A DNA stretch of 64,000 nucleotides, taken from positions 30,814,001-30,878,000 of the forward strand of contig NW_025963857.1 in assembly GCF_023055435.1 (NCBI RefSeq), given 5' to 3'. The notes under the pieces were generated by a model, which was given only the letters and a program-made list of their open reading frames with translations, was not told the origin of the DNA and did not search any database. A program made the translations under genes and the position numbers. Below are positions 10,297-52,200 of the stretch, piece by piece (the stretch's first letter is position 1; every line of letters starts with the position of its first letter). Source of the stretch: Haliotis rufescens. Its lineage: Eukaryota.

Positions 10297-10961
10297 GTGA
10301 AAGCTATGGTGAAGCGAATGGCTATGGAACTCTCCCAGTGAAGAGGAGGAATCCTATCACAAAGTTAATGAAAGATGAGACCCAGCCCAAACCTAGGATT
10401 CATATTGGAATGCCCGAGGACTTCCGGAGAGTGTCAGCCATTATTGATGTCGATATTGTGCCTGAAACGCTGCGTAGGGTAAAACTGATGAAAAATGGTT
10501 CTGATAAACCACTTGGTTTCTACATTCGTGATGGTACAACTGTGCGGGTTACATCACAAGGACTTGAAAAAGTACCTGGAATATTTATATCGAGGCTTGT
10601 CCCTGGCGGGCTTGCTGAGAGCACGGGACTACTGGCAGTTAATGACGAAGTTCTAGAAGTGAACGGAATTGAAGTTTCAGGGAAAACTCTAGACCAGGTG
10701 ACAGACATGATGGTGGCAAATAGTGCAAATTTGATCATTACTGTGAAACCTGTTAATCAGAGAATGACACTAGGGAATCAGCGTGGGGCGCCAGGGCGAC
10801 ACTCCCAGATGTCCTCCACGTCACAACACTCGTACCGGTCATCTAAATCGTTTGACAGTGACACAGTTATTGAACACGATGACGAAGATGAAGTTCATGA
10901 TCATCTTAGTAAACCTGAAAAAGAGAAATCGGACAAAGACAGCGCTGTTGTGACTTTGTAA
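10297..10961 (+). CDS. par-6: Partitioning defective 6 (Par-6), terminal coding exon: semi-CRIB, PDZ domain, C-terminal PDZ-binding motif. The PB1 exons lie upstream of the window.
   Basis: Acceptor tttcag|GT at 10291-10297. The frame reads [88 protein letters not shown], the Par-6 signature, and ends SAVVTL*. Confidence 0.97.
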
Positions 10962-23534: not shown

Positions 23535-24853
23535 TATAAATTGGGCGGCAAAAGAAAGTATAGGTCGAGTTTCATGATCGATAAATAACAAAAAGAGGTT
23601 TTGTTGTGAATTATAATATAATCTAGGGAGGGGTAACAAATGATTGATCAACCACAGTTTGAATGAAATTGTGCAGTCACAGGTAATGTAAGCTCAAGGA
23701 AAACAATGGTGGGGTAAGAAATTTCATTTTCAAAAGTTGCCTGAAATGTCACCAAAAAATTGTCAGACACACTACAAGTTCATTGTCGACACAGTTGCCT
23801 TCAATAGGGTTTATGACCTCCAGCTGCCTCAATGCCTGCTGTGATACGCCACCTCATCGATGACGTCAGTCTTCTGATTACGTGGACTGGAATCCGTTGC
23901 CACTCGTCTTTCAGGTCCTGCTGCATCTTGTCTGTTGGCGGGAGGCTGATGGCGTGCTCTAATCTGTCTGTGAAGATCGTCCCACAGATGTTCAATAGGA
24001 TTCATATCGTGTGAGTGGGCAGGCCAGGTTAAAACGTCAACGTTCTGCTGGTTTTGAAAGTTCCGAGTTAGTCTTGCAGTATGGGGCCTGGCATTGTGCT
24101 GAAACAATGTCCCCTGCTGTTGGTTTTGTAAGAACGGAAGCACAACTGGCTGCAACACTTGGTCTCTGTACTGCACAGCGTTCAGGTTTCCCTGTTTAAT
24201 CACCAAATCAGTCTTCTGATCTCCACAAATACCGCCCCACACCATAACACCTCCCCCGCCGAATGGATGGACCTCTCGAATACACGCCAGAGCCAAACGT
24301 TCCCCTCTGCGTCGATAAACTCGTTCTCTGTCGTCATTTCGAAACAAGTTAAACCGACTTTCATCAGTGAACAGCACTTGACGCCAATTTCTCACTTGCC
24401 AGCGTCGAACCTGCCTCGCCCATCGGGTGGCCCAGTCGTCAAAGGCGCCGCGATTCGCTGTGCAGGATTGCGTCCCTTGGGCACGCCAGAAACCTATGAT
24501 TGTGGGTTCGAATTCCGGTTCGCCCCAATCATGTTTCTAGGTTTGTCAGCACCATACCCGTGCTCGTGGGTTTCACCGAAGTGGTAAACGTCTGAGACCT
24601 GCATCACTTTGGGCATTCCTCCCACATTAAGCTGACACGCCGCGATATGACTGGAATACTGTTAAAAGCGGCGTTAAACACAACTCACTCACTCACTCAC
24701 GAGCGCCGTCAAAGGTGGCGCTTTTGGGTGAGGTGTTTTTTGTACCTGTTCCTGGGCAGTCATATTCCCAATACCCACTTTCCCCTAGATATCGCTGTCT
24801 TTAGGAAAATTACAAATTGCCAATCTATACTTTCTTTTGCCGCTTAGTTTATA
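23535..24853 (-). mobile_element. Internally deleted Tc1 element; transposase remnant at 24420-23801
   Basis: TIR ...gcggcaaaagaaagtatag at both ends with TA TSDs; WRQVLFTDESRF..GGGGVMVWGGI..WPAHSHDMNPIEHLW. Confidence 0.92.
24421..24700 (+). mobile_element. Family B SINE nested in the Tc1 element
   Basis: Highly similar to 8427-8703. Confidence 0.88.
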
Positions 24854-29330: not shown

Positions 29331-29583
29331 ATGCCGATATTCCAGACATGCGCAGTGCTTCTAGACGGCAAGAAGGAAGTGTACCGGAAGGGAGAGACGG
29401 TGACGGGGTCTTTAGTGCTGGACGTCACAGAGAATGTCATAGTTAAGGGGGTCAGAGTTTACCTGTATGGGGAGACGCTCGTCAAGTGGGACGAGTTCTC
29501 TCCAGGCAGCCTTGGAGGAACCAAGGACTTCGTTGCCAAGGAAAAATATGTCGGACTTGTGTTTACAGTATTTGGCAAGAAAC
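29331..29583 (+). CDS. Copy 1 exon 1: Arrestin_N start
   Basis: MPIFQ..VYRKGETVTGSLVLDV..KGVRVYLYGE..VKW, a typical ARRDC N-terminus; donor gtaagt at 29584. Confidence 0.93.
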
Positions 29584-32500
29584 GTAAGTTTAAGAAATTT
29601 TACGTGGACTAGAATTAACATTGTCAGAAGCCTATTTTTCTTCGCTTCGAGTCTTTCAGCTAACTTTAAAAATTAAAAAAATAATCAATCAATGCGTAAA
29701 GGTAAGAGACCTTTTACAATGACTTTAAGTCTGTGTTTGTTATTGCTACCTAGCATCTGTGTCTATATTAGTCTTCGCATCTGTGTCTATGTGTGTCCAC
29801 GTAACTTCAGAAAGTCAATATTGGAAGGCGAGTAACTGTTTGACTTGGTTCAGAAAGTAGATATATAAGAAGTAAGTTACAAACTAAATATTTTTTTAGA
29901 AAATTATTTTGACGTCGACAACATACATTACCCTATGTGTTTCCTTCATTTTCATTGCATTTTTATACTAAAGCCCTATTATTGTATTGGAACACATAGA
30001 TAGATCAAGATTTTAATGTTAATTCTATTGAGGATTTGTACTCATACGGAATTCACAAATAAATTCCAGTATTTTGTTTTTGTGTATAGTTTGTATTAGT
30101 CAGACATGTGATGTTCTGTGTCAATTCAGGTAAGACAGAACTTACACAAGACCTGTACAATGTTGAAAACGGGTGATATTTGAGTCAATATCAGGCTGCT
30201 ACTCCAGATACATAATCTGTCATATGAAGTAGGTCAACACTGGTTGTACAGGTCTTTGTAGGTTTATAGCGTAGACTTTAAACCAAGCGTCTATAATAGG
30301 AGCGTTGAACATTAACATTCCAGGGCCCACTTGCACAAAGCGATCTTAGCGCTAAGATGATCGTAACTCCCATACTTTAACATAGGCTTACAATATTCTT
30401 AGCGCTAGGATCGCTTTGTGCAAGTGGACCCAGGTCATTGTGTACACAATACGATCTGCTTTATGTTGACCGTAATCGGCTACGCCCTTGAGCAAGTATT
30501 TTTTACCGGAGATCATATTACCATCTATTTCAGTTTTTGCGTGGAAAAAACAAAAATCTGATTGTGACGTCTCCATCCTTGAACCTTTGTCGGTGTTTTT
30601 ATAAGGTTACAATAATAATCAGTTCAGCTTAAATGCACAGAATCTGTCACCAGTATCCCATGCTTGTCGTAAGAGGCGACGAAAGATGATTGGATGATTA
30701 GTAAGCCCCGACGACGTGGTTCGTTTCTAGTGCAATCATCCAGTGGTTCTCCTGGTCCTGACCATCTTCCCCAGACAAGAGAGTTAACTGACTATAAAAG
30801 TCCAGTTTCCACCCTTGCCGAACTTGGCTGGTATTATGGAGTTACATTTTGGCTGGACTAACGAGTCTATGCATAGTCCAATCAAAATCGCGCACCGAAA
30901 TCGAAATCCGGTTCGTAAACTGTCGTGCAGATTTTAGCCGATTGCGGGATTTGCAAAGCATAAGCACCGCCAACTCGTTGACAGCGGATATTTTGCAAAT
31001 CTTTTCATGTTTTGAATCAAGGTACACACTTGATTTGATGCATTTCGCGATGTAAGACCCGTTTTATCACAATATAGATCTTGATTATCGATCAGATCGT
31101 CCTGACTCGGCGCCACCAAGCGATACGAGAGGTGGAATCTGATTGGTCCATAGGCGAGGCGTAGAAGGGACATAACTGGTAATAGCCACTGGTGGCGCTA
31201 CGATCGAGCCCAGTAATTCCACCCTAGTTCGGCAAGGGTGGAAACTGGACTTTTAAAGTCAGTTAACTCTCTTGCCTCGGGAAGATGGGTCCTGACTCGA
31301 TTACTACAGGCCGCCGTGATATCGCTGGGATATTGCTGACTGCGGCGTTAAACAACACTCACCTCCTCATGATTTGTGTCTGAGCATTTATACAACATAC
31401 TACTGATACCTTTGTCTCCCAGAAAACGCCACTGGTCCAAACCACACCCTTACAGCGGGACGACACAATTACAGATACAAGTTCAACCTCCCAAAGGAAG
31501 GCCTACCGTCGTCTTACGAGGGTCAGAATGGCGCCATCAGATTCTGGCTTAAGGTTGAGGTGAACAGGCCGTTCCCCAACTTCAACCAGTGCTGGTACCG
31601 TGGCATTACCGTCTTGGACGACATCAACGTCAACGACTCTCAGTATAAGGTACGAGAGTATGTCAGTGTCAACAAGGTATAAGTGTGTACCTTTTGAAGC
31701 ATCCACCTTGTATCTTGCGATGCACGAGGCGCTGTTCGTACCGTTCGAAAAAAATAGTATACCACTGAATATTTTCATACAATCTTCTGTCAAATGAGGG
31801 GCCTTACTGTAGCCTTGTGGTTATATAATAAGTCACACGGAAGACCCGAGTTCGCTTCCCAAAGCTGACACTATGTGGGAATACCCTATCGGTTCCCCAG
31901 TCACGCTTTTACTGAAATGTTGGTAATATTCACGCACAAAATAACTCGGGTCGAATTATACTAAGGCTGTTGTAATTCTGTAATTTCTGTAGTCCATTTA
32001 AGCTTTCCATAGACCACCTAAATGTATGTATATTTGTGACAGGCATCAGTTCGACGTCAGGCAAAGAAACAGATTTCTAAGGCTCTTGGTTTGGGAGATG
32101 CTGGTTCTCTCACCTTGACCGCTGCAACTGACAGGGGAGCTTACTGTGCAGGAGAAAAGATCGCACTGAAAGGTATACTTTAGGTCAAACTCCGAGTAAC
32201 ATGTCCTGTCTTATCTATGTTGATGCTTTTGGAGTTGTGTTTCAAGCCTGGAGTATAGAATCAATCCCCTGTTTCAGTTGTGGTGAAGAACGAGTCAACG
32301 AAGGACATGGGGAAATTGAAGGCTCAACTGGAGCAGAAAGTTGTCTTCACGGCCAGCAACGAGACGAAGACACGTTACACCGTTATAAGGGTCCTGGAAG
32401 GATCTCCTGTCATGAAGGTCGGTCAAGATAATGCCCCTAAAAGTGAAAGTTAGGTCTTAAATTAATACGGAATACTAGTATTTACATATGTGGAATGCTT

Positions 32501-35500
32501 GTACAGAGCAAAACACGCTTACCCTTTTCGCAGACACCTGGCGTCATCACTGATGTTCGTTTAGTGACCTTTTCATATGTCACATCTCTGTTTTGCCTTT
32601 ATGCCGTATCAGATCAGTTTCGGCAGATAATCGCGATTGATTGGCGGTGACGTTTCCTGTTTAACAAGTTCTCTTATTATCCAGGGAGAGGAGAGGGTCT
32701 GGAACAACCAACTGCTGGAGGTAGACGCCATTCCACCGTCAACCAAGACCAGGTCCTGCCACATCATCGCGGTCAGCTACTGCATCAAGGTAAGTCACCG
32801 CCCCTTGATCAATCTGGAAATTTTCATGACAAGTTGTCCGTCTAATCTAAAATTAAAAAAAGGTAAAAAACGTATAAAGGCTAGAAAAAGTACCATACGC
32901 TGGGGCATATATTTTATGGAAGATCTCAATCCGGTATTCACCTCATGCTTACGTGGTATGTTTTATTCCAAAACAAAGTGTCACAAACATAGACTTAGAG
33001 TTGTTACAAATACAGATGTCTGAGGAAATAATCAAAGACATCAACTTCCACAAAGATCTATGGTGCTGCAATGCTGTGTACTAGTTTGCGGCCTGTGAGG
33101 GTTTCGAATACCAGATTTGCCCCAACTATTATTCTTGGTGTGTCAGAACCATACCCGCACTCGATGGTTTCACCACAGTGGTAAACCTCTATGACCTCAG
33201 CCACTTTTGTCTTCCCTTCCATGTGAAGCAGATAAGCCCTGATGGAACCAACCCAAACAACGTTAAACGGAAGGAACTTAGTCACTTTGACCCAGTAATA
33301 CAGTGTAGAAATTGGCTTTATTCCATCAGGTCCTGGTTGAGGTGCCTCTAGGATTTAACCTTGAGACCATCATGCCCATCACTATCGGCACCATCCCGTA
33401 TGGCCACGCCCCTGCTGCTGGGGCACCGAGAAGGGGAGCTACTGCTAGCGGCGGTGCAGGTAAGTCTGACCCCGGCTAATTCAGTGTGTGTCCAGAGTTG
33501 TGGTTGTTTTTGAGCATTGAATATCAGGATTTATTATATACTTCAGTGTGAAAGAATGAGTTTTCCGAAGTTGACAAAAGTGATAATTTCATTACAGAGA
33601 ACATAACAATTGATACTTCACTGCAGTGAATCAAGATCTATATTGTAATAAAACGGGCCTTACCTCTCGAAGTGCATCAACTCACTTGAGCACGTTGATT
33701 AAAAACATGATAAAATTTGCAAAATATCAATCTACGCCCACTTGGCGGAACACATGCTTTTCTAATCCTGCAGTCGTACGCAATCAGCACGTTGAAATCC
33801 ATTTCGTTTAGTTCGTTATGCGATTTTGATTGGACTATGCATAGACTCGTTAGTCCAGCCTAAATATAACTCCAGAATACCAGCGGGAATACGGCAAGGG
33901 TGGAAACTTGACTTTGGACTTTTATGGTCAGTTTAATATAGCGAATGTCCAGATTGTCAGAAGACACAAAGAGAAATCTCAATTTATCCAGTTTCTGGTG
34001 GTGTCAATTACAGTGTTTGTTTAGTATTCACATGTAGGATATATTACAGTTAATATTGTTAAACCTCGCATTCTGGTTTGAACCAAAATACGCCTGATGT
34101 ACAGCAACTCTGACACAGACTAATATGTACCACCAGGCCGTTCCTTACTGTGGATTCATTTCAGAGATTGATGTCTCCAGTGCCATAACCTACACCAAAT
34201 GCAACGCCGGGTTCCATGTCTGCCGGACGTCTGAGGGGAACTTTGTGAACTACAAATACACCCCCATGTGTGCCTACGTGGTTAACTACACTTTCCCCCC
34301 TCCCCCTAGCCCCGCCGGTGGTGCTGTAGGGACACGCCCTGCTGCTGCTACTGCTGCTGCTGCTGCAACACCACGCCCTACTGCTGCTGCAGCTACTACA
34401 AAGGCACAACCCAAGCCGGCGTCTCAAGGTGTGAAGGTTCCTCCAGCAACCTTTGTCCAAGCTCCATCTTATGCCCTTGCCCCAACACCGTCCCAAGCCC
34501 CGCCCCACGTTACTGCTCCTCCCATGGTGCTACCACCGTCCTATGATGATGTGCTTAGGATGGACAATCCGGCTGCTACTACGGAAATTGCTGTCACAGT
34601 AAGTAGGCCTAGGGTCAATGAAAAACAAGAAAACCGTTATCACTATTCCCGCCATCGGGCACATTAGAATTTGAAGTGTTTACCTCAATGCTGATTTTCT
34701 AACAGCATGCAAGACAAACAGGAAGCACAAAACCCAAAGCATGGAAAAAGGGAGGGTAACACCGGACAAAAATATTAAAGGCATCAGATAATTAGCTCTT
34801 GACAGATATCTCTCAGATAAGCATGACAAATTATATTCACGTAACGTCAGTAGTTTCTGAGAGAAATTATCCCCAATGTGGCCAAAATGCGCCAAACAAG
34901 GAAACACAAAATATATTTTTTCAGAAATACCAAACTATCAAAAGTCACCAATTCAGCATGTGTTTGATGCATATGCACAGTTTCATAATAAAATATTAAA
35001 CGACATCGGAGTTTATGTTCCGGTAGCGAAACGTAAGGGGTGTAAAGACACATAGAACCCATTCCTATATCCTCCTCCCACTTCGTGGCGGGGGATAATA
35101 ACCTTCAACCGCCGCGGATCTGAAGAGTTGAACGCATTATTGCTATGGTCTGTGCCCTTTTCTAATCGGGACACGTCTTACGCAAACAGGTTGTTTTTAT
35201 CATTTGTATAAGGAACTTGCTCATGTTGCGATGAATCGATTGTCAACAAGTGTATCTAGGTTTGTAGTCTCTTTGTCCGTTCGCTCCAAGATTTACTTCA
35301 CGTCATACATTCATGGCCACAGTTCATAGATTTTGTCTTTACTTTGTTTCCAGCCGGAGATGGCAGACAAGCCGTATGGACTGCTTTTCCTTCGGTTCCC
35401 GGACACCCGTGTTCAGGAGTTCAGAGACACCATAGTGAGAGAACACCAGAGTCTTGCTGAATGTGAGGGAGAAATCATTGCATTTGCGCCACAGGTGATA

Positions 35501-38500
35501 CAAAGTTTAGTTTCCATACCCCTAGGACGAATAGAAATTCATTTTTCCTTCTTGTAATTATGTGATGCACAGCCGTGTCCCAGCTGTAATTGGACAACGG
35601 TGTTGATGGGAACGGGATTCAGTTCATGGTACACTTCCACCAATGATCAACAGCGCGTTGAACCAGACGGATAACACTGATACTGTACAGATCATGTAAT
35701 CACGTGTTATCAGTCATCTGTGAATGATTGCTTTAACGCAGTTTTAGTAATGTTCCAGCAACATAACGACATTTACATTTACATGTGGGAATGGAACAAC
35801 CCGGGCATTTCGCATGACGAGCGAACGCCATAATCACCAAGCTACAGTACATCCCCCACCCCCACCCCGCCCCAGTAGTCCTCTGTAATGGACACTATTT
35901 AAGGATTGGTTTTGGGAACACTTACTGTGTCAACGAAACCACCCTTTTCCTCACACAGTTAGAAATAGAAATTCTTATAGATATGTTAGGGCGTACTGTG
36001 ATATTTCAAAAATTATTATTGATGAAAATAATTTTGTGTCCCCCCCAAAAAAATAAAAATAAATATTTTTTTAAATAAATAAAAATAAATAAATGAAAAA
36101 ATAATGCTTGCTGCTGATGATGGATGTCCTAAAACATGTGTTGTTTGTCTTTCTGACAGTATGTTTTTAATCGACGGATCTCATATTCACTAATTCAGCA
36201 ATTCCTCCGGTGCACGCTGGAGAGAGATATATACAACTTGGTGTTAATAGTAAAATACGACAGTTAATATTTCAAGCAACCTTTTGTCATTTTGGTTTTT
36301 GGAAATTAATGACTACATTTGTTGTTTCTATGATCGATGATAGCAAAATCCTAAAATAGAGTATGCTTATAGGTCCTACAGGAACATAGCCAATGGCCAG
36401 CACGTACGTCTGTCGCCGTTTTGAAGTTTCCGTCTGCGGAGGTGGCAACTGATTGGTTCAACAAGACGCCAGGAGTAGCTGATCCAAAATGGCTGGAAAC
36501 ATGTGACGCCATTGTTGGAATTATGAAGGAACAGTTCAGAGAAGGTTTGGACGTATAGGATATATATTCCATAGAAAAATAATATTTTAACTGATCTGTG
36601 ACTTGAGTGACTATTTACGGCCATAGTCAGCAATATTCCGCTATATCATGGCGGTCTAATAATCGAGTCTGGACCGAGCAAACCAATGACTGAAAGCATG
36701 AGCGAGGATCCACAACACGAGGACACGGTGAGGACGAGGACAGCCTGACCAGCCGATGTATTAAGGTCTTCTCTTGTGACAAGAATAGAGTACTGGGGAC
36801 CAAGTCGACACAAAAATTCCTAGCTCATCTGGAAAAGGTCCCGTTTGAGCCATATTTGTTATTTTGAAAATTGAAAAGGGTATTTGGGATATTGACCTTG
36901 CCATGTCTTGGACCTTCTCATTGAACATTTTAAATTCATTTCGAGGCCTTGGTTAATCTTGACTTTTCCAAATTTGAAGCACCAGTGGTACAAAATGATG
37001 TCTGATCCAGTACACTATTTTGATTTGCGCTATGTTCCAGTGTAATTTTTAGGCGACTTGCATATACATGTGTTTCTGACGGTGCCACCGGTGGGGCAGG
37101 ATACGCTCAGCTCGCGAGTACCTGCTGTCATCACTACTTCATAGTGATTCATAAACACGTGCTTGTGATATGGTTGATGTGACGTTGTTGCGTACACAGT
37201 TGCGTTGTGGTCAGTTGTCCACAAACATGAAATATGCCAATACCATAATGTGATGCTTTCCTCATTGACAGCCAACAGCATCTTTTCAATGATAACATTG
37301 AAATACAAGCTACCAGTTAAAAAAGCCAAGGTCAACAAGTACAGCACACTGTTCAGTCAGACGCTGCGTCCTCTCAGGTAAGATTCCATGCTCACAATTG
37401 TTTAACTGATGAATCTTGCCTCATGATGCAATGTCATGTGTTTTCTTCCTCAGCTAAGGGTGATTGGTTTTGTATGACAACTCGCCTGAAGGATATTGCT
37501 TCAATCACTGATAAACAGATTCCGGGGTAGACTATGTCTTCAGCAACCCATACTTGCCGTAAAAGGCGACTATGCTTGTCATAAAAGGCGACTAACGGGG
37601 TCGGGTGGTCAGGCTCGCTGACTTGGTTGATACATGTCATCGATCCCAATTGCGTGGATCAATGCTCATGATGTCAATCACTGGATTTTCTGGTCCAGAC
37701 TCGATTATTTACAGACCGCCGTCATATAGCTGGAATATTGCTGAGTGCGGCGTTAAACAACAAACAAACAAACAAACACTGATAAACATAATGTTAGTGT
37801 GTAGAACAAGCGCAGATAGAGAATTGGGGAAAAAGGGGAGGGGTGAATGGAGTGGGATCGGTGCATGTGGATACCAGGTTAAACTTCAGTGTCAGTGGAG
37901 TAAATTGATCTCGAACAAATGACCAAATGAGTTAGTTGTAGTATTGCTTTAAAAATTCAAATGTTATATTTTAGTGCTGCTTCCCAAAAGACTGTGTGTG
38001 GGGTGTGGGGTGTCGGGTGTGGGGTGTGGAGTAGTTTCGGCTTCTCGTATGTAGAATGACCGCTCACCCGTATTGTAGCAGGTTACACAAAAACTGGCGA
38101 AATATAGTCATCAGTTATCGTTCCCTTTACACACCCCTGGAATGGGGGTTAGCGCAGGTGTGAAACACATTTGATCTCTTTGTTGTTATTATACTGAAAC
38201 TATTCTGCAGTCAAGCGGTATGAGCTATTCTGCACTAAATTTTCGAATGGATATGTATCCACGTGACATGATTGCAACATAACATACAATGTTTCACGTA
38301 CTGTCAAATTTTCAAATCATCAGCTCGTCTCTCTCTCGACATGTCTACTGTAGGGAGAAAGTAGTGCACACAAATCCTTTATTTTTGTCCATATGTCTTT
38401 AATTCTTCATATTATCTACCCTCAAGAAAACACTGTTCGACAGTTTAAAGTAGTTCATCATTTTATGCTGTAAATCTGTTGTGCAAATAAACAAATAAAC

Positions 38501-41500
38501 TGAGTAGAACATATCAAACGTTTTATTAATTCATCCATTACATAATTGCTTTGACTATCACCTGCTGTATCTATCACCATATCTTGTAATTATTAAAGCC
38601 AGCGATGTGCGAGAAAAAAAGATATGAAGAGATGGCGTAGTTGACGTCATATATTTCGTTTATACGTTTTGCAACATATGCAAAATTATTACGTTAAAAT
38701 TAAGTGTTGCCTCTTTATTGTACAAAGAAATGTCATTGAAATTATTCCACTTCACGTTTGACGTCGTTAGCAATGGATGACATCATTTCTAGTTGATTAC
38801 GGCAATATAGTACTTCCTGTCAGACAGAGAAAAGAAGATTGACCAATTAACCTCCTGGATATTCTAATGCAGCAAAAAGTTACAAAAGGCCAAATAATGA
38901 TATAACATTGCTGAATGCACTGACGCTTGTTTTCACTACGTGTTGAGGAAGGAGGACGTTTCACTGTTTGACGCATCAGTCACCAAAGTGGTGTCCGGTG
39001 CTATTCTTTATGTAGACTTGAAGCATATGTTGTAGTGTTGTATCAGGTGAAGATGTGCCTTGCCTTTGCCTTCATGTTTGTCGCGGAGCCATCGGTGGGG
39101 CAGGATACGCTCACCAAATCGTTATGTGATGGTGATTCATAAACACATGCGGAGCCGTCGGGTAGCCCAGTGGTTAATGCGTTTGCTCGTCACGACGAAG
39201 ATGCGGATTCGATTCCCGACATGGGTACAATGTGTGAAGCCCATTTCTGGTGTCCCCCGCCGTGATATTGCTGGAATATTTCCAAAAGCGGCGTAAAACC
39301 ATACTCACTCATAAGCACATGCTTATGCTTTCATATAGTCGGAATCATACAATGGATAGCTTTTAGCAGAGATTTCTTATGGTTATTGAAAGAGCTTTGT
39401 CGCTTTTCTTCACGATATAAGATGACTGTGGCTGGTTGTTACAGACTGTTGAAGACTGGGGTGAATCTGGTGTCGACAAACAAGTTCACCACACTGCGGG
39501 GCAGCTGGCTGGAAGACAAGTACTACCTCTCGGTCACACAGTGGGAAACTTTAGATCTTTACTTCGAGTACAGAAGCGAAAGGAAATGTGGTAAGCATGT
39601 TTGTGATTAACCTCCGGAGGTTATGCTAATCGTAATTAGTAGTCACTTGAAACGGGACAGTTCGAACGATTTGTCACAATATGACCACCCTGCATTTGAA
39701 TTTTCATGTCTATTGTGCAAAGGTTATTCACATTAAGGGATCTTTGTTAGAAACAGTATTTTTGTGGTCACTGCTTCAACACGTACTTTTTTCTTATGAA
39801 AAGCAATTGTTTGTTTGCTTGTTCCACAGCTCATTTTGTCAGAACATACAGTATATTTGTCCATCAAAATCCTTTTTTGACGTGAGGCAAAATTATTTTC
39901 TGAAGGTATTTTCTTGCCTTCCTGGGATATCAAATGATCAGTCGTTTAGCTGTATGTTGATCGGTGTTTTCGGTCTAAAATTATTTAAGTGAACTTATTA
40001 TCCCCCGCCCAACAAAGTTGGCGGGGGATGTAGAAACGGGCTCCGTCCGTCACCTCGGTTAAAAAAGGTTAGGGTTTGTTTAGATTTAATAATGTCATAA
40101 ATTCTGCAACAGGGGTGGGGACATAGCCACGTTAGTGGCCAACTCTTGTTAATTTAAAAATATTATATTTGTTTGTTTGTTTGTTGTTTGACGCCGCACT
40201 CAGCAATATTCCAGCTATATTACGGTGGTCTGTAAATAATCGAGTCTGGACCAGATAATCCAGTGATTGACATTATGAACATCTATCCACGCAATTGGGA
40301 TACGATGACATGCATCAACCAAGTCAGCGAGCCTGACCACCCAATCCCGTTAGTCGCCTCTTACGACAAGCATGGCTTGCTGAAGACCTATTCTACCCCG
40401 GATCTTCACGGGTCTAAATATGATATGAAGCCTATTTAAAATTATTGCCACACTTGCTTGAAGCAATCTTGGAACAGCAACAAGCCATTTAGCATCGTTC
40501 ATGAAACAAATTCCGTTTTTGTAATTTTCTTTGAAAAAAACTTGTTTCGAATGAATATGTCCTTTCGCGGTGTTGAGGTCATTAACAATATCATGGTCTA
40601 ACATAGGTCTAACCAATCGTAATGCAGGGTTAATACATGCCATGGAAGAATACCAGTTACTGTTGCACCTTGCCGTGTATAATCCTAAGACTCATTACTT
40701 GTTTCATCCCAGGAAAGAAATGTTTGAGGACTAGATGTGGAATGTTGGTTGGTTGGTTTGTTGTTTAACGCTGCACTCAGCAATATTCAAGCTATATGAC
40801 GGCGGTCTGTAAATAATCGAGTCTGGACCAGACAATCCAGTGATTAATATCATGAGCATCGATCCACGCAATTGGGATCGATGACATGCATCAACCAAGT
40901 CAGCGAGCCTGACCACCCGATCCCGTTAGTCGCCTTTAACGACAAGCATAGTCACCTTTTACGGCAAGCATGGGTTGCCGAAGACCTATTCTACCCCGGA
41001 ATCTTCACGGGTCAGATGTGGAATGTTACGATTCTGGGGAAATCCAGGGGAAATCCAGGGGAAATCCAGGAGATAACAGTAAAGGGACTGCTTCTGTTTT
41101 TGCAGGTGCTGGCAAGGACCTGCAGTTATCAGTAGTGCTCCAGATTGTAAACATCTCATGTGTGTACACTCACATCAGTATGACCATTGCATTTTGTTCA
41201 CAGGTCCCAATAAAGAATGTTCTGAGTTGCTCAAGGAAGTATTTGACATACAACCAAGTGTTATCTTCCAATCCGAGGATTTGTCTCTCTTTCAAATGAC
41301 ATCCATACAAACGGCCGAGAGATCTGACAGCCCGGCCGTCGAGATGCAGTCAGAGACTACACAAACTCAAAGCGAGGCTCCAGGGGATGGGACCGAGGGC
41401 TCAGGGGAAGGACAGACAGACCTCACAAGATCTGACAGTCCAGCCATCGAAGTGCAATCGGAGGATATCGATAGTGCCGCTACCCAAAACCAAAGCGAGG

Positions 41501-41583
41501 CTTCAGCTGATGGGAATGAGGCTGCAGAGGAACGTCAGGAAGAAACTGCTGACATAAAAACCACAATAGCTGACTTACAATAG
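29331..41583 (+). CDS. Alpha-arrestin (ARRDC-like)-PPxY-tandem DUF1330-like fusion gene, copy 1; 12 coding exons, 787 aa
   Basis: Exons 29331-29583, 31423-31649, 32043-32172, 32278-32417, 32685-32789, 33330-33459, 34165-34598, 35354-35494, 36373-36544, 37272-37377, 39445-39590, 41204-41583. All GT-AG with matching phases; total 2364 nt with no internal stop. The paralogue has the same exon structure. Confidence 0.88.
30324..30430. mobile_element. PIF/Harbinger-type MITE; relatives at ~11043-11115 and ~59980-60091
   Basis: TIR ggcccacttgcacaaagcgatc with a 3-bp TSD cag; the site is empty in paralogous intron 1 (~50455). Confidence 0.8.
30763..31287. mobile_element. Non-autonomous DNA transposon with ~60-bp TIRs
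   Basis: catcttccc..agagttaactgact..aaagtccagtttccacccttgccgaac is inverted at both ends. TSD is ggtcctgac (9 bp, or 7 bp if the ends are CC/GG). Empty site in copy 2 at ~51820; a related inverted fragment lies at ~33625-33935. Confidence 0.85.
31423..31649 (+). CDS. Copy 1 exon 2: Arrestin_N core
   Basis: LTAGRHNYRYKFNLPKEGLPSSYEGQNGAIRFWLKVEVNRP matches the alpha-arrestin LP(S)SFEG.HG.IRY motif. Confidence 0.95.
32043..32172 (+). CDS. Copy 1 exon 3: Arrestin_C start
   Basis: GSLTLTAATDRGAYCAGEKIALK; AG/GT flanks. Confidence 0.92.
32278..32417 (+). CDS. Copy 1 exon 4: Arrestin_C
   Basis: VVKNESTKDMGKLKAQLEQKVVFTA; AG/GT flanks. Confidence 0.92.
32685..32789 (+). CDS. Copy 1 exon 5: Arrestin_C
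   Basis: WNNQLLEVDAIPPSTKTRSCHIIAVSYCIK; donor gtaagt. Confidence 0.92.
33330..33459 (+). CDS. Copy 1 exon 6: Arrestin_C end
   Basis: LETIMPITIGTIP, the classic P(I/V)TIGT(I/V)P end of Arrestin_C; donor gtaagt. Confidence 0.92.
34165..34598 (+). CDS. Copy 1 exon 7: Cys/Tyr segment, Pro/Ala/Thr linker, PPSY motif
   Basis: ttcag acceptor; ...LPPSYDDVL...; donor aca|gtaagt conserved in copy 2. Confidence 0.9.
34622..35100 (-). mobile_element. Helentron/HINE-like non-autonomous element
   Basis: Ends aaacaag... and ...ggcgggggataata with a subterminal hairpin; absent from copy 2 intron 7; relative at 39995-40150 (+). Confidence 0.6.
35354..35494 (+). CDS. Copy 1 exon 8: DUF1330-like repeat 1, N-half
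   Basis: PEMADKPYGLLFLRF..ECEGEIIAFAPQ; phase 0 at both ends; near-identical in copy 2. Confidence 0.85.
36373..36544 (+). CDS. Copy 1 exon 9: DUF1330-like repeat 1, C-half
   Basis: VLQEHSQWPARTSVAVLKFPSAEVATDWFN resembles the DUF1330 pattern V.EG.W....V.IIEFPS.E.A..WY.S. Confidence 0.85.
37272..37377 (+). CDS. Copy 1 exon 10: DUF1330-like repeat 2, N-part
   Basis: ANSIFSMITLKYKLPVKKAKVNKYSTLFSQTLRPL; phase 1 in, phase 2 out; same length in copy 2. Confidence 0.82.
37517..37778 (+). mobile_element. Family C SINE
   Basis: Full body with (AAAC)n tail. Confidence 0.85.
39151..39310 (+). mobile_element. Family A tRNA-SINE
   Basis: A and B boxes; 12-bp TSD ataaRcacatgc at 39139-39150 and 39311-39322. 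Confidence 0.87.
39445..39590 (+). CDS. Copy 1 exon 11: DUF1330-like repeat 2, core
   Basis: TGVNLVSTNKFTTLRGSWLEDKYYLSVTQWETLDLYFEY, a degenerate L(E/R)G.W...V.(E/Q)(F/W)..L motif; donor gtaagc. Confidence 0.83.
39995..40150 (+). mobile_element. Short Helentron/HINE-like element
   Basis: ttattatcccccgcc..ggcggggga hairpin, tccgtccgtc, terminal ...ctcttgtt. Confidence 0.6.
40168..40414 (-). mobile_element. Family C SINE
   Basis: Reverse complement of family C. Confidence 0.85.
40747..41013 (-). mobile_element. Family C SINE, young full-length copy
   Basis: Perfect 14-bp TSD agatgtggaatgtt at 40733-40746 and 41014-41027; empty site in copy 2 (~62935). Confidence 0.92.
41204..41583 (+). CDS. 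Copy 1 exon 12: end of repeat 2 plus acidic Ser/Thr-rich repeated tail
   Basis: ttcacag acceptor; two RSDSPA(V/I)E.QSE..TQ.QSEA..DG.E units; TAG at 41581-41583. Confidence 0.85.
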
Positions 41584-41810: not shown

Positions 41811-42075
41811 GTTTGTTGTTTGTTTGTTTGTTAACGCCGCACTCAGCAATATTCCAGCTGAATGACGGCGGTCAGTTAATAATCGTGTCTAGACCAGACA
41901 ATCCAGTGATTGACAACATGAGCATCGATCCACACAATTGGGATCGATGACATGCATAAACCAAGTCAGCGAGCTTGACCACCCGATCCCGTTAGTCGCC
42001 TCTTACGACAAGCATAGTCGCCTTTTACTGCAAGCATGGTTTTCTGAAGACCTATTCTACCTCCTTCTTCACGGA
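41811..42075 (-). mobile_element. Family C SINE just downstream of the copy 1 stop; further partial copies at ~21657-21805, ~45730-45930 and ~46715-46896
   Basis: Reverse complement of family C. Confidence 0.85.
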
Positions 42076-42120: not shown

Positions 42121-44870
42121 CTGTAATTAGTGTGACTGTTACCTGTAATTAGTGTGACTGTGACCTGTAATTAGTGTGACTGTTACCTGTAATTAGTGTG
42201 ACTGTTACCTGTAATTAGTGTGACTGTGACCTGTAATTAGTGTGACTGTGACCTGTAATTAGTGTTACTGTAACCTATAATTAGTGTGACTGTTACCTGT
42301 AATAAGTGTGACTGTTACCTGTAATTAGTGTGACTGTGGCCTGTAATTAGTGTGACTGTGACCTGTAATTAGTGTGACTGTTACCTGTAATTAGTGTGAC
42401 TGTGACCTGTAATTAGTGTGACTGCGACCTGTAACTAGTGTGACTGTTACCTGTAATTAGTGTGACTGTTACCTGTAATAAGTGTGATTGTTACCTGTAA
42501 TTAGTGTGACTGCGATCTGTAATTAGTGTGACTGTAACCTGTAATTAGTGTGACTGTTACCTGTAATAAGTGTGATTGTTACCTGTAATTAGTGTGACTG
42601 TTACCTGTAATTAGTGTGACTGTGACCTGTAATTAGTGTGACTGTTACCTGTAATTAGTGTGACTGTGACCTGTAATTAGTGTGACTGTGACCTGTAATT
42701 AGTGTGACCGTTACCTGTAATTGGTGTGACTGTGGCCTGTAATTAGTGTGACTGCGACCTGTAACTAGTGTGACTGTTACCTGTAATTAGTGTGACTGTT
42801 ACCTGTAATTAGTGTGACTGTGACCTGTAATTAGTGTGACTGTGACCTGTAATTAGTGTTACTGTAACCTATAATTAGTGTGACTGTTACCTGTAATAAG
42901 TGTGACTGTTACCTGTAATTAGTGTGACTGTGGCCTGTAATTAGTGTGACTGTGACCTGTAATTAGTGTGACTGTTACCTGTAATTAGTGTGACTGTGAC
43001 CTGTAATTAGTGTGACTGCGACCTGTAATTAGTGTTACTGTAACCTATAATTAGTGTGACTGTTACCTGTAATTAGTGTGACTGTTACCTGTAATTAGTG
43101 TGACTGTTACCTGTAATTAGTGTGACTGTGACCTGTAATTAGTGTGACTGTTACCTGTAATTAGTGTGACTGTTACCTGTAATTAGTGTGACTGTTACCT
43201 GTAATTAGTGTGACTGTGACCTGTAATTAGTGTGACTGTGACCTGTAATTAGTGTTACTGTAACCTATAATTAGTGTGACTGTTACCTGTAATAAGTGTG
43301 ACTGTTACCTGTAATTAGTGTGACTGTGGCCTGTAATTAGTGTGACTGTGACCTGTAATTAGTGTGACTGTTACCTGTAATTAGTGTGACTGTGACCTGT
43401 AATTAGTGTGACTGCGACCTGTAACTAGTGTGACTGTTACCTGTAATTAGTGTGACTGTTACCTGTAATAAGTGTGATTGTTACCTGTAATTAGTGTGAC
43501 TGCGATCTGTAATTAGTGTGACTGTAACCTGTAATTAGTGTGACTGTTACCTGTAATAAGTGTGATTGTTACCTGTAATTAGTGTGACTGTTACCTGTAA
43601 TTAGTGTGACTGTGACCTGTAATTAGTGTGACTGTTACCTGTAATTAGTGTGACTGTGACCTGTAATTAGTGTGACTGTGACCTGTAATTAGTGTGACCG
43701 TTACCTGTAATTGGTGTGACTGTGGCCTGTAATTAGTGTGACTGCGACCTGTAACTAGTGTGACTGTTACCTGTAATTAGTGTGACTGTTACCTGTAATA
43801 AGTGTGATTGTTACCTGTAATTAGTGTGACTGTTACCTGTAATTAGTGTGACTGTGACCTGTAATTAGTGTGACTGTTACCTGTAACTAGTGTGACTGTT
43901 ACCTGTAATTAGTGTGACTGTGACCTGTAATTAGTGTGACTGTTACCTGTAATTAGTGTGATTGTTACCTGTTATTAATGTGACTGTGACCTGTAATTAG
44001 TGTGACTGTGACCTGTAATTAGTGTGACTATGACCTGTAATTAGTGTGATTGTTACCTGTAATTAGTGTTATTGTTACCTGTAATTAATGTGACTGTGAC
44101 CTGTTATTAGTGTGATTGTTACCTGTAATTAGTGTGACTGTTACCTGTAATTAATGTGACTGTGACCTGTAATTAGTGTGATTGTTACCTGTAATTAGTG
44201 TGACTGTGACCTGTAATTAGTGTGACTGTGGCATGTAATTAGTGTGACTGTGACCTGTAATTAATGTGACTGTTACCTGTAATAAGTGTGACTGCTACCT
44301 GTAATTAGTGTGACTGCGACCTGTAATTAGTGTGACTGCGACCTGTAATTAGTGTGACTGTGACCTGTAATTAGTGTGATTGTTACCTGTCATTAGTGTG
44401 ACTGTTACCTGTAGTTAGTGTTACTGTGACCTGTAATTAGTGTGATTGTTACCTGTCATTAGTGTGACTGTTACCTGTAACTAGTGTGACTGTGACCTGT
44501 AATTAGTGTGACTGTTACCTGTAACTAGTGTGACTGTGACCTGTAATTAGTGTGACTGTTACCTGTAATTAGTGTGATTGTTACCTGTAATTAGTGTGAC
44601 TGTAACCTGTAATTAGTGTGACTTTGACCTGTAATTAGTGTGACTGTTACCTGTAACTAGTGTGACTGTTACCTGTAACTAGTGTGACTGTTACCTGTAA
44701 TTAGTGTGACTGTTACCTGTAATTAGTGTGACTGTTACCTGTAATTAGTGTGACTGCGATCTGTAATTAGTGTGACTGTTACCTGTAATTAGTATGACTG
44801 TTACCTGTTACTAGTGTGACTTTGACCTGTAATTAGTGTGACTGTGGCCTGTAATTGGTGTGACTATGAT
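42121..44870 (+). repeat. 22-bp tandem satellite CTGTAATTAGTGTGACTGT(T/G)AC, about 125 units, with a degenerate tail to ~45200
   Basis: Head-to-tail units with no spacers. Confidence 0.97.
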
Positions 44871-47396
44871 CTTAGATTAGTTTTACAGTGATCATAGATC
44901 AATCTGACTGTCATCAGTGATTAGTGTCATTGTCGTCAGATATTGGTTTGATGGTGATAATAGATTAGTGTCATTGTCATCAGATATTAGTATAACAGTG
45001 ATCAGAGAATAGAGTTAGTGTCATCAGTGATTATTGTGACTGTATTCCGAGATTAGTGTTACTGATGTAGGAGATTAGTGCGACTGTGATCAGAGATTAG
45101 TGTTATTGTCATTAGTGATTATAGTGCAACTGTGATTAGTGATTAGTGTTACTGACATAGGAGAATAGTGTGACTATGATCAGATCAGAGATTAGATCAT
45201 CAACGAATTTTGTAGATGACAACATGCACGAAGTAAGAACATGACCGACAGGCCTACCCGATATTTCAGAAACGAATACACCTCACAGGTTGAATGGTTC
45301 CAGAGTTCCATGTATTGTGATGTGACTTAATATGATCGTCGCTGGTAATGATAAAGGAACCGATTGATCATTATGTGTTTATTCCCATTGTAATAAAGTA
45401 TATAGAGCTATTAGCTGATTTGTCATTGATAGACATGACAGCACATATTGGTATAACAGCCCAGTCCTACATGGGATGATGTATTCTAGTTACACAACCA
45501 TGACATCCAATGCGTTGTCCGGGAGGTGGTCATACACGTTTGTCCTATACACTGTGTATCGGGTGATAAAAGTGTATCAATATTTTTATGAGTGGTACAT
45601 GAAACTGATGAAAGGTTGTAAACTGATCAGCTTTAGTTGTAATGTTTCATTGTAAACGAAGCTAAATCGAAAAGTTCCTGGCCTCGTGGATATTGCTTTG
45701 TGTAATGTCAGGTTTCGGCGCGTGTATGGATTTGTTTTGTTTGTTTGTTGTTTAACGCCGCACTCAGCAATATACCGACGGTCTGTAAATAATCGAGTCT
45801 GGACCAGATAATTCATTGATTTACATCATGAACATCGATCCGCGCGATTGGGATACGATGACATGCTTTAACTTAGTCAGCGAGCCTGACCACCCGATCC
45901 CGTTAGTCGCCTCTAAAGACAAGCATAGTGAATAACATCCTATTGGAAGACACTAAGTTACAGATTGGTAACTGCATGCAACTCTAAGAAGTCAACTGGA
46001 TAATTTAACAAGTGAGAAAAACTGCAAAAAATATCGAAAACTGAGAAACGAGCTGTGATTGATGAAGTACCTACATAAAGTGGGCACGTCACCACAGGAA
46101 ATACACGAAGACGCGAAAATAAAGACTGAAAAGCACTTTACATAAGCATAAAACATTTTTGCTGAAAGCAGAATTCATTGTATGATTCCAACAATATCAC
46201 AAGCATGTGTTTAATCACTATCAAATAGTGATGATACCGGTGTTCGCGAAAAGATGTGCGTATCCTGCCCCACAGGTTACAACCATCACAAACACATGCA
46301 ATGGCAAGTCATTCTTTCACCTGAAAAACACTGGAACATATGTTACAATTCAGTTATTGCATCAAGTGGGAATGAAAGACGGTGACGAAAACGACATTTA
46401 TAGCTTTCTGCACTTGGACTGTTTAATTTATTTCTTTTACTTTCCCATATTGCTGACAGACAGACAGGCAGGTACAAGCTGTACAAAAGAAACAAAGTAC
46501 CAATAAATACATGCTCTTTCAAATCACGATTCATCAATAAACATACAGATGTTTACACGTTTATGTTATCTATACACTGCAAAAAGAAATTCCGGATTTT
46601 AACATCTTTGAAATTACGACATCAAACTTTCAATGAAAGCACTTATTAAACAACCTCATTTGTTCCTTACATGTACAAAACATATTCAGAAATATATTTT
46701 AGGCGTTTATATCACACAATCCAGTGATTAATATCATGAGCATCGATCCACGCAATTGGGATCGATGACATGCATCAACCAAGTCCGCGAGCCTCGCCAC
46801 CCGATCCCGTTAGTCGCCTCTTACGTCAAGCAAAGTCCCCTTTTTACGGCACGCATGGGTTGCTGAAGACCTATTCTACCCCGGATCCTCACGGGCCACC
46901 TGCCACGGTGGCACAGTGGGAAAACATAGTGTTAAAAACTTATCACTATATGTGAGGTTGCATGTTCGATTCCCGTCATCCATAATAAAAAAATGTTTTA
47001 AGCCTAGTCTTCAATTTTAGAACATTGAACGTCCAAACTTCGTCTGCTACTCAACTCACCAGGTCTTACTAGGAAAAAGCAGAATCTCCCATGAGGTTAT
47101 CACGAAAAAACAAGTACCGTCCAAACAAAGGCCAATATCCGTGGTAAGTTTATACTCGCTGCTATCCGAGCAAAGTTGAAACAGAAGAAATCCAACATCA
47201 ACATACACTCTTCAAAAAAAGGAAACGCGCAGGTAGTTTGTAGTTCATTGGCTGAAGCTGCCCTGTGCCCCTTACCCTCCTGACCTGGCACCTCTGACTA
47301 TTGTCTCTACCCTAAACTCAAATTTCCCAGTGACAACGAAGTGATTGTCCTCATCGAGAACGTTTTTTGGTATCAAGAAAAAGCAGAACCATCAGT

Positions 47397-48991: not shown

Positions 48992-49244
48992 ATGCCGATA
49001 TTCCAGACATGCGCAGTGCTCCTAGACGGCAAGAAGGAAGTGTACCGGAAGGGAGAGACGGTGACGGGGTCTTTAGTGCTGGACGTCACAGAGAATGTCA
49101 TAGTGAAGGGGGTCAGAGTTTACCTGTATGGGGAGACGCTCGTCAAGTGGGACGAGTTCTCTCCAGGCAGCCTTGGAGGAACCAAGGATTTTATCGCCAA
49201 GGAAAAATATTTCGGACTTGTGTTTACAGTATTTGGGAAGAAAC
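48992..49244 (+). CDS. Copy 2 exon 1 (Arrestin_N)
   Basis: Two amino-acid differences from copy 1; donor gtaagt. Confidence 0.93.
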
Positions 49245-52200
49245 GTAAGTTTAAGAAATTTCGAGTGGAATAAAATATAAATTTTGAGAAGCCTATTTTT
49301 CTTTCCATCGAATCTCTTAACTAACTTAGAAAATAAAACAATTTGAACAAATTTAATCAAAACAGGAAGAGAAGTGACCTTTTACCTTAACTTTGATTCT
49401 GTGTTCATTGCTACTACTGTCTTAACATACATGCTAATGTTTCGTCTTTGCATATGTGTTTTCGTGTGTTGACGTCCTTCCTTGTCCTTGTGAAGGTCTT
49501 TCATAAAAGGGGAATAAAATTAAAGACTGTTCATCGAGTCTGTCAACAACTTTCATTCATGAAACACTCTTAAATAACGGCAATCAATTCGTGAAGGGAA
49601 GTGACCTTTTACCTTGACTTTACGTCTGTGTTTGTTAATACAATTGTCTAAGCATATGTGTTTATGTTTGTCTTTGGATATGTGGTTATGTAAGAAGAAT
49701 TCCCTTAGGGGCAATACAATCTTACCTGATCTTATCTTAAATTACGTCAGGGTTTGGTAATATATGTTGGTTTTGGGAATTCCAACCTGGCCGTTCACAA
49801 AAACAGAATACAATCAACATTTTCTTTCTTTTACCTTAATTTCAGAAGGTCAAGATTGGAAGGAAAGTGACTATGTTCAGAAAGTAGATATTAGAAGTGA
49901 ATTTGAAAAACCCCATATGATTTACAATGTTATGTTCACGTCATGTTTCCAAATATAACTAATTTAGTAAAAGCATTATTGATTTTTATTGGACATATCC
50001 GGATTTTGATTTTAATTCTTTTAAGCATTTGTAATCGTATAGAATTTGAATTTAGTTATTGGTTTTGGTTACGTGTTATTATGTAAGGGTTGTCTTTTAA
50101 TAATCAGAATAAAACGGTACTAAAAGGCAATAAAAAAGGCCTTTGTACGATTCTGACTATATCTCAGTGAGTGAGTATGGTTTTACGCTGCTTTTAGCAA
50201 TATTCCAGCAATATCACGGCGGTAACTATATCTCAAGCACAGGATGTTCTGTGTCCAATCTGTGATACGCCATTCGCATGTACTCCCAGCCTTGATACAA
50301 GTGATAACAAGTGATATTTGAATCAATATTGAGATAGCTTCCCTTGAAACATAATCTCTGGTATAAAGTAGGTCAACACGGATTGTACGTGAAGGTGTAT
50401 GTAAATTTATGACTTTGAACCAAGAGTCTGTAACAGGATAGTTTAACATGAACATTCCGGGTGCGTCAATACACAATACGATTTGCTTAATGTTGAACTG
50501 TAATCGCCTACGCCCTTGAACAACCCACAAATAAGAGAACGGATGAGATGATAGTGAAGGTTTAATGACGATAAATGTCTGTAAAATTACTGCATCTCTG
50601 GCGTTCACTCTCCTCCCGAGAACATCACACAGACGTGCTATTGGGGACATGTCAGGAAACGAAGGGTGCCAGTCCAATGTCCGTATGCCTTCTCGTCGCA
50701 GGATATCGGTGACGACCTGGGCACGATGTGGAATAGATACAGATCATGGTCAAAATGTTTTGGCCTGGCATACCGCGCGGCGCTAACGCAGTTTCCTGCC
50801 TTCTGAGAATTGGAAACAAAACATTGATTCGTCTGTAAATATGGTATTTAAAGGTGTTAGTGTTACACCCTTAGCAGGACGCCTTGCTTTCTGGTGGGAA
50901 GCACGGTGCCGGTTTTTAACGGTAGATGTTTAAATTCCCCTTCGTGTTATTGTGCCGAATTCTCTATTGATAACAGGTGCAGATTTGAATATATTATGAA
51001 GTTGAATTGATGTAATGAGACGGTATTTTCTAGGTGTCGTTTTGAGGCCTGCCATGCCCATGCCTCATTACAACCGTCTAACCATACTTGTCCAACAGTT
51101 GGGGAATTACACTTTTTGATTTGCCAAACATTCAGGCAACTTGGGATTTTGACGTCCACCCCCGACCCCGCTACAGGCGCTCGCTTTTTGACTTCTGTGT
51201 GCACGTGATTCACATGCTGTTCATGTTTGAAGTGAAATTTCATTCTGATATGATGATGTTGAGATGCAACGCCACGGTATTGTAAATATGCATCTCAATG
51301 ATAGCTACATTCAGACTATAAGAACCTTTTTTTGTAGGTAGTATGGGCTATCGTCTATGTACGTTTTTGCTTGGGATAATATCAAAGGATGGTATTTATT
51401 GTTCAAAATATTCTTCACGGAAGCCTAGAAATTTTGCATACACAGACAAACACTCACAGACACAGACACATAAGCACGCACACAAACACGCAAACAAGCG
51501 AGCACACAAGCAGACACACACAGACACACAAAGAAATCAGAATATCACATCTTCACCCTTGAACCTTTCTCGGTAGTTTGATAAGGTTACAATAATAATC
51601 AGATCTGATAAAATGCACAGCTGGTTTTTGATTTTTATCATAAACTGATCGTGTTGCACATTTTCATTTTGGCATACTAGAGGTCAAGGTATGCTGCTGG
51701 TGCAGAATCGCTCACCATTGTCCAATACTTGTCATGAGAGCCAATCTAAGTAGAATGGATGATTATTGAGCCCCGACACCCTTGCTCGTTTCTCACACAA
51801 TCAACCATTGGTTCTCCTTGTCCTGACTCGATTACTACAGGCCGCTGTGATTTCGCTGTGATATTGCTGACTGCGGCATTAAACAACTCTCACTTCTCAT
51901 TGTTTGTATCTGTGCATATTAACAACTAAATAATGTCACCTCTGTCTCCCAGAAAACGCCGATGGACCAAACCACACCCTTACAGCGGGACGACACAATT
52001 ACAGGTACAAGTTCAACCTCCCAAAGGAAGGCCTACCATCATCCTTCGAGGGTGAGCATGGCGCCATCAGATTCTGGCTTAAGGTTGAGGTGGACAGGCC
52101 GTTTCCCAACTTCAACCAGTGCTGGTACCGTGGCATCACCATGCTGGACGACATCAACGTCAACGACTCTCAGTATAAGGTACGAGAGTATAGCAATGGC

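Follow-up and report, generated by a model that had tools for sequence, protein, structure and literature searches.

A 64-kb window of the Haliotis rufescens genome (30.81–30.88 Mb on its contig; 1.33-Gb assembly) contains a 12-exon, forward-strand gene at 29331–41583 that encodes a 787-amino-acid protein. The gene, here called copy 1, is probably an abalone alpha-arrestin fused to a single-chain DUF1330-type barrel as an added module, and this overall explanation is held with moderate confidence. The arrestin half is followed by a Pro/Ala-rich linker with a PPxY motif, two divergent alpha/beta repeats that are predicted to form one barrel, and an acidic tail. Positions are coordinates in the window, which is the whole 64-kb stretch of DNA analysed.

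Alpha-arrestins (the ARRDC, TXNIP and ART proteins) use PPxY motifs to recruit NEDD4-family HECT ligases to membrane cargo, and usually consist of an arrestin fold and a disordered tail bearing short motifs. Such a tail closing in a conserved folded domain would offer a new way to regulate the adaptor or to give it cargo. DUF1330 occurs widely in bacteria; four of its structures are solved, and its function is not known. An animal DUF1330-type protein tied to a well-understood trafficking machine offers a concrete setting for testing what the domain binds. The gene is also a case of a domain missed by standard annotation, in which Pfam sees the arrestin half alone.

Gene structure

Copy 1 has exons of 253, 227, 130, 140, 105, 130, 434, 141, 172, 106, 146 and 380 nt, with AG/GT at all internal boundaries and compatible phases. 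The coding total is 2364 nt, or 787 codons and a stop. Each of the 12 exons, translated in frame, occurs letter for letter and at the expected residue number in the 787-amino-acid H. rufescens RefSeq protein XP_046366993.2 (P0011, "arrestin domain-containing protein 1-like"). The six codons split by introns were verified by position arithmetic alone. Full-length analyses of copy 1 used the database protein P0011, and exons were scanned singly. The features of the gene are as follows.

29331–29583, forward: exon 1, start codon and first part of Arrestin_N (P0011 residues 1–84; Pfam Arrestin_N E 3e-08 for the exon alone)
31423–31649, forward: exon 2, second part of Arrestin_N (P0011 86–160; Pfam Arrestin_N E 3.5e-12)
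32043–32172, forward: exon 3, start of Arrestin_C (P0011 161–203)
32278–32417, forward: exon 4, Arrestin_C (P0011 205–250; Pfam Arrestin_C E 0.0053 for the exon alone)
32685–32789, forward: exon 5, Arrestin_C (P0011 251–285)
33330–33459, forward: exon 6, end of Arrestin_C (P0011 286–328)
34165–34598, forward: exon 7, Pro/Ala-rich linker, with VTAP at 34509–34520 and PPSY at 34533–34544
35354–35494, forward: exon 8, first half of barrel repeat 1 (beta1, alpha1, beta2; P0011 474–520), present in three genomic copies
36373–36544, forward: exon 9, second half of repeat 1 (beta3, alpha2, beta4; P0011 521–577), present in three genomic copies
37272–37377, forward: exon 10, first part of barrel repeat 2 (beta1, alpha1; P0011 579–612)
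39445–39590, forward: exon 11, middle of repeat 2 (beta2, beta3, alpha2; P0011 614–661)
41204–41295, forward: exon 12, first part, end of repeat 2 (alpha2, beta4)
41296–41583, forward: exon 12, second part, acidic Ser/Thr-rich tail and stop codon

Read-through of the exon 7 donor (34598) gives 22 extra codons and then a stop at 34665–34667. Exon 9 holds the motif WP...KFPS..A.DWF, and exon 10 has a single AG...GT pair able to give the required 106 nt. Exon 11 aligns with DUF1330 positions 25–67 at low probability. The tail (P0011 693–787) has an isoelectric point of 4.05, 24% Asp+Glu and a predicted local distance difference test score (pLDDT) below 50; it contains two SDSPA[VI]E.QSE repeats and the conserved end ADIKTTIADLQ.

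A first-pass annotation, made from the DNA sequence, had proposed this 12-exon, 787-residue model, and the exon-by-exon match, GT-AG boundaries and phases show it to be correct and equal to the RefSeq model. The same annotation laid out Arrestin_N and Arrestin_C within the first ~310 residues, a Pro/Ala linker with PPSY, two ~105-residue alpha/beta repeats at ~474–690 forming a single-chain pseudo-dimeric barrel, and an acidic tail. Each of these parts was recovered at the positions given here and below, the barrel as a structure prediction.

Arrestin half and linker motifs

Pfam placed Arrestin_N at P0011 residues 7–155 (E 7.3e-27, 94.6 bits, cut-off 24.9) and Arrestin_C at 181–309 (E 5.1e-26, 92.1 bits, cut-off 27.7). 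All eight PDB sequence matches of this half were alpha-arrestins, with no beta-arrestin among them, and the best solved relatives were TXNIP (E 6e-24), Caenorhabditis elegans ARRD-6 (E 1.9e-22) and ARRDC3 (E 5e-19). By sequence, the N-terminal half is an alpha-arrestin. It resembles ARRDC1-4, TXNIP, ARRD-6 and the yeast ARTs in having Arrestin_N and Arrestin_C, a Pro-rich tail and PPxY. Known alpha-arrestins end in the disordered tail, whereas the abalone protein continues into a predicted folded two-domain barrel of ~215 residues and the acidic tail.

The linker (P0011 330–473) is 35% Pro+Ala and carries PPSY at residues 452–455. In the family alignment (A1), conservation at the PP.Y positions is 90% or more, and the motif is also present in P0004, a divergent relative. 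Most family members have P(S/T)AP eight residues upstream of PPxY, as PTAP in copy 2 (P0012 residue 458) and PSAP in copy 3 (P0001 residue 412), H. rubra P0002 and P0004. Copy 1 departs from this ARRDC1-type arrangement with a degenerate VTAP at residues 444–447, and its orthologues have VTAP in H. cracherodii and ASAL in H. rubra (P0009). These differences suggest functional divergence among the paralogues. The P(S/T)AP and PPxY pair was overlooked by the initial sequence reading and is newly recognised here. By analogy with ARRDC1, it suggests a link to budding and ESCRT, the endosomal sorting complexes required for transport, in the family.

In ARRDC1, a C-terminal PSAP binds the TSG101 UEV domain to drive the release of ARRDC1-mediated microvesicles (ARMMs), and a protein fused to the ARRDC1 C-terminus is packaged into ARMMs (PMC9105457). 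This precedent, the motif pair in copies 2 and 3, P0002 and P0004, and the RefSeq product name "ARRDC1-like" raise the possibility that the abalone protein is an ARRDC1-type budding adaptor with built-in cargo, whose barrel would leave the cell in ARMM-like microvesicles or be brought to the budding site. The P(S/T)AP motif would bind the TSG101 UEV domain, the arrestin half would target the plasma membrane and ESCRT would be recruited; in copy 1, VTAP would mean that this route was lost or weakened and that the copy became specialised. That account is considered unlikely. Neither copy 1 nor its orthologues have P(S/T)AP (VTAP, VTAP and ASAL stand in its place), a four-residue motif can occur by chance in a linker rich in Pro, Ala, Ser and Thr, and the one pointer to kinship with ARRDC1 in particular is the RefSeq product name.

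Engineered ARRDC1–cargo fusions share with the abalone protein an arrestin, late-domain motifs and a folded C-terminal protein (PMC9105457). Those fusions are artificial, and the likeness is one of topology, known here from sequence alone. An extended version of the analogy, in which the gene is a natural counterpart of such fusions, is more doubtful still. Late-domain budding might then export a small-molecule-binding DUF1330-type barrel or position it at the membrane, thereby linking vesicle release or transporter ubiquitination to a metabolite or xenobiotic signal, and the paralogues might have diverged in route, copy 1 having lost P(S/T)AP.

Relation of the C-terminal module to DUF1330

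Profiles were built from 36 bona fide DUF1330 domains of proteobacterial genomes, with 25 ABM, 15 Dabb and 7 NIPSNAP domains as controls. A family sub-alignment of repeat 1 scored 96.3% against DUF1330 in hhalign (E 1.6e-9, 67 columns), compared with 0.3% against ABM, 0.7% against Dabb and 1.6% against NIPSNAP. A second hhalign comparison, of the whole family alignment with a 20-sequence DUF1330 alignment, scored 91.1% (E 1.1e-6, residues 491–551). The alignment between repeat 1 and DUF1330 covers 59–67 columns and takes in the FPS...A..W/Y motif. NIPSNAP, ABM and Dabb were ruled out as the family of repeat 1 by their hhalign scores (<2%). Language-model (ESM-atlas) neighbours of exon 9 and of the two-repeat part were DUF1330 clusters with a score of 0.89, which serves as a lead only. 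A further atlas lead, to stand-alone flatworm proteins of ~208 amino acids with tandem DUF1330, points to a possible donor of the barrel. An hmmsearch of PDB sequences with the family profile gave no DUF1330 match.

The first-pass annotation had assigned repeat 1 to DUF1330 and called repeat 2 a degenerate version. For repeat 1 the kinship held in profile–profile comparison (91–96%, controls <2%), but membership did not, the Pfam model remaining below threshold everywhere. Repeat 1 is by these profiles a divergent relative of DUF1330 and not a member by the curated Pfam test. Repeat 2 scored a weak 14% against DUF1330 in hhalign, in the register that had been proposed, with other families below 1%. 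Its degenerate DUF1330 character finds support in that register and in the DUF1330 structures 3lo3 and 2fiu being its top single-domain matches. Repeat 2 appears DUF1330-like in predicted structure only.

The abalone module resembles the solved DUF1330 proteins Atu0297 (2fiu) and that of Colwellia (3lo3) through the profile match of repeat 1 and the superposition of repeat 2. The bacterial DUF1330 proteins found were single domains of ~95 amino acids, and 2fiu was deposited with two chains. The abalone form differs in being an animal protein, with two very divergent copies on a single chain that also includes an arrestin, and with introns interrupting them.

Side-by-side DUF1330 genes occur in some proteobacteria, as little as 15 bp apart, and are a plausible precursor state for tandem-domain forms. 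Two such pairs are listed.

G093:C4:160112-160390 and 160405-160680: adjacent DUF1330 genes
G025:C11:104962-105240 and 106342-106620: adjacent DUF1330 genes

Predicted fold of the C-terminal module

An AlphaFold2 model of P0011 was built from a shallow 10-sequence alignment. It has pLDDT 70–85 over residues 479–691, with the arrestin half modelled poorly, and contains predicted beta-alpha-beta-beta-alpha-beta units at 481–571 and 581–684. A model of the arrestin-less H. rubra protein P0002 has pLDDT 80–93 over residues 70–285 and a predicted template modelling score (pTM) of 0.55; 178 of its 393 residues are disordered in the model.

The best structural matches of the two models were single-chain tandem barrels, aligned over ~190 residues and both units. 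They include the marine metagenome protein 2pgc (Z 13.4 and 14.3 for the two models; 193 of 206 residues aligned, root-mean-square deviation (rmsd) 3.7 Å), the coproheme decarboxylase/HemQ 6xub (Z 12.3 and 13.1) and the anthrone oxidase-like protein 5f9p (Z 11.6 and 11.8). Foldseek searches with the module gave E values down to 5e-8 and target-normalised template modelling (TM) scores of 0.5–0.63. Among single domains, repeat 2 matched 3lo3 best (Z 8.6, rmsd 2.6 Å, 92 of 94 residues), followed by 2fiu (Z 8.4, rmsd 2.8 Å, 96 of 96 residues), which ties with NIPSNAP 5k9f (Z 8.4). The solved DUF1330 structures 2fiu, 3lo3, 3dca and 3hhl were verified. Residues ~479–691 are predicted to pack, sheet to sheet, as one single-chain pseudo-dimeric alpha+beta barrel. 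The likeness to tandem barrels of this kind (2pgc, 6xub, 5f9p and FN1347, 3mcs) lies in Z scores of 11–14 over ~190 residues and both repeats. Those proteins differ from the abalone module by an identity of just 5–13% and the lack of a sequence-profile link, and none has an arrestin attached.

Many relatives with a dimeric alpha+beta barrel act as cofactor-independent oxygenases, isomerases or haem enzymes. The structural neighbours of the abalone module (the anthrone oxidase-like protein, putative monooxygenases, coproheme decarboxylase/HemQ, chlorite dismutase and DyP peroxidases) could accordingly be read as signs that the barrel is catalytic and is taken to membranes by the arrestin half. 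Such a role is very unlikely here: identity to these enzymes is 5–13% and a common fold does not mean a common function, hhalign to ABM gave 0.3–0.8%, the specific sequence relative DUF1330 is without known activity, and no conserved His, Cys or other catalytic set was matched to a known site.

Ovorubin, the egg carotenoprotein of the snail Pomacea canaliculata (PDB 9uaj chain F), was a further tandem-barrel match (Z 9.6, 167 of 184 residues, identity 8–9%). It is another gastropod protein with the tandem-barrel fold.

Homologues and range

Homologues P0001–P0006 were retrieved with exon 9 as the query. H. cracherodii and H. rubra have annotated orthologues that share this architecture. P0004 is a 32% identical relative with the same layout, in which one uninterrupted open reading frame (ORF) on a 1795-nt contig runs from the last Arrestin_C strands through PSAP and PPSY to both repeats. 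P0003, a repetitive protein, and P0005, which has no aligned stretch and no Pfam domain, were set aside as homologues. Three plasmid matches to exon 9 in tblastn were attributed to chance (E ≥1).

Searches with P0004 and with P0006 each retrieved the query itself alone, and the C-terminal region of P0001 retrieved Haliotis proteins only. The family alignment, run against bacterial and archaeal genomes, gave no match. In these searches, which used short queries or a word index, the range of the family appears so far to be the abalones and one divergent relative, P0004. This narrow known range limits the reach of the finding.

The literature search found no paper that mentions arrestin together with DUF1330 and none that treats this gene in Haliotis. 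The first-pass annotation had presented the architecture as undescribed. That stands for the combination of domains, but the protein itself was already a RefSeq model named ARRDC1-like. RefSeq annotates its arrestin domains only, and the C-terminal barrel is newly recognised here.

Probable arrestin–barrel fusion

At the exon 7/exon 8 junction (34598>35354 in copy 1), GT/AG sites in phase 0 are retained in each of the three paralogues. An annotation artefact would nevertheless give the same model if an arrestin gene (exons 1–7, stop at 34665–34667) had been merged with a separate tandem-DUF1330 gene (exons 8–12). Translation continued past the exon 7 donor does end like a normal alpha-arrestin, 22 codons on; an ATG stands at 35360 in copy 1, close to where exon 8 begins; and H. 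rubra P0002 and P0010 contain the C-terminal part only. That ATG is confined to the copy-1 lineage. There is no Met at this position in copies 2 and 3 or P0004, so in these exons 8–12 are not translatable alone as a separate gene, and the Met of copy 1 looks derived. The conserved junction sites, the single ORF that crosses the junction in P0004 on its 1.8-kb contig, and the start of P0002 within the exon-7 linker, with PPSY, so that it spans the junction too, also speak against a merge, which is highly improbable. The fusion gene is probably real and conserved in abalones.

The start of exon 8 coincides with the N-terminus of the barrel domain. Exon 8 begins at residue 474 and the DUF1330 alignment starts at residue ~484, a few residues into the exon. 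Because the alignment begins near the exon 8 start and the donor lies 22 codons before an in-frame stop, it is suggested that a downstream barrel gene was captured via a new donor inside the ancestral last exon of the arrestin.

Proposed working

In the preferred explanation, an alpha-arrestin with an added barrel, the arrestin fold would bind membranes or membrane cargo, as in other alpha-arrestins, and PPxY would recruit NEDD4-family HECT ligases to that cargo, as in the ARRDC, TXNIP and ART proteins. P(S/T)AP could add an ESCRT link in the paralogues other than copy 1. Splicing from the donor in the ancestral last exon would carry the tail on into five further exons, which would encode two divergent DUF1330-type ferredoxin-like domains and the acidic tail. 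In the prediction, the two domains pack against each other and reproduce within one chain the homodimeric alpha+beta barrel of DUF1330. The barrel is probably an extra module that binds a small molecule or a partner protein and either modulates the adaptor or is carried by it. This working draws on the exon structure, the arrestin domains, the motifs, the conserved architecture, the predicted fold and the kinship of repeat 1 with DUF1330. The ligand-sensing ubiquitin-ligase adaptor put forward in the first-pass annotation would be one version of the binding-module idea, and a purely conjectural one.

Several points weigh against this explanation. The Pfam DUF1330 model (PF07045, cut-off 23 bits) matched neither the exons nor the full-length proteins, and a six-frame search with it across the whole genome gave no hit; its best score in the family was 16.2 bits, under the cut-off, for the fragment P0006. 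Repeats 1 and 2 have no detectable sequence similarity to each other. The packing of the domains is a prediction from the 10-sequence alignment, and the exon 7>8 splice is drawn from the Gnomon model, conservation and P0004. Two isoforms of H. rubra LOC124280225, P0002 (X3) and P0010 (X1), are without the arrestin half, and may be truncated models or a paralogue that expresses the barrel without arrestin. Selection on repeat 2 and the tail looks relaxed, with ratios of nonsynonymous to synonymous substitution (dN/dS) of 0.59 and 0.93 from small counts. The DUF1330 literature consists of mentions in passing, with no ligand or activity reported.

Tandem copies

The gene is triplicated in tandem in H. 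rufescens, with three paralogous RefSeq proteins on one 32.8-Mb contig. Copy 2 matches copy 1 in its 12 exons, their lengths and their phases, apart from a longer exon 7. Copy 3 lies ~35 kb past copy 2, beyond the window, and its 747-amino-acid protein (P0001) aligns exon for exon.

48992–63507, forward: copy 2, whole gene (P0012, XP_046366994.2, 801 amino acids; PTAP and PPSY)

Values of dN/dS were calculated between copies 1 and 2 for each region, from small counts. They were 0.19 for the arrestin exons, 0.37 for repeat 1, 0.59 for both repeat 2 and the linker, and 0.93 for the tail. The first two values favour the preferred explanation. Exon 8 DNA is 99.3% identical between the two copies (35354–35494 and 58359–58499), with zero synonymous changes, and the block of exon 8 and its flanks is ~88% identical. 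The exon 8 identity may reflect gene conversion or very strong constraint.

The space between copies 1 and 2 is occupied by a 22-bp satellite, CTGTAATTAGTGTGACTGTTAC, with 124.8 copies and a 91% match at 42121–44865 and a degenerate continuation to ~45184. Intron 8 of copy 2 contains a perfect tandem repeat of 47 bp x 6 (58584–58867), and intron 10 a 27-bp x 12.7 repeat (61438–61781); the repeat listing shows no counterpart of either in introns 8 and 10 of copy 1. A short interspersed repeat with open frames ...VRLADLVDACHRSQLRGSMLM... occurs on both strands, in introns and between the gene copies, at the following sites.

37596–37919: interspersed repeat
40215–40340: interspersed repeat
40731–40916: interspersed repeat
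41872–41982: interspersed repeat
~45730–45929: interspersed repeat
~46705–46898: interspersed repeat

Neighbouring features

A PDZ-domain open frame at 10338–10958 on the forward strand (Pfam E 8.5e-12) is probably an exon of the upstream neighbour gene. DDE_3 transposase frames at 18256–18714 on the forward strand (E 4.5e-07) and 23832–24395 on the reverse strand (E 1.4e-16) are likely remnants of Tc1/mariner-type elements.

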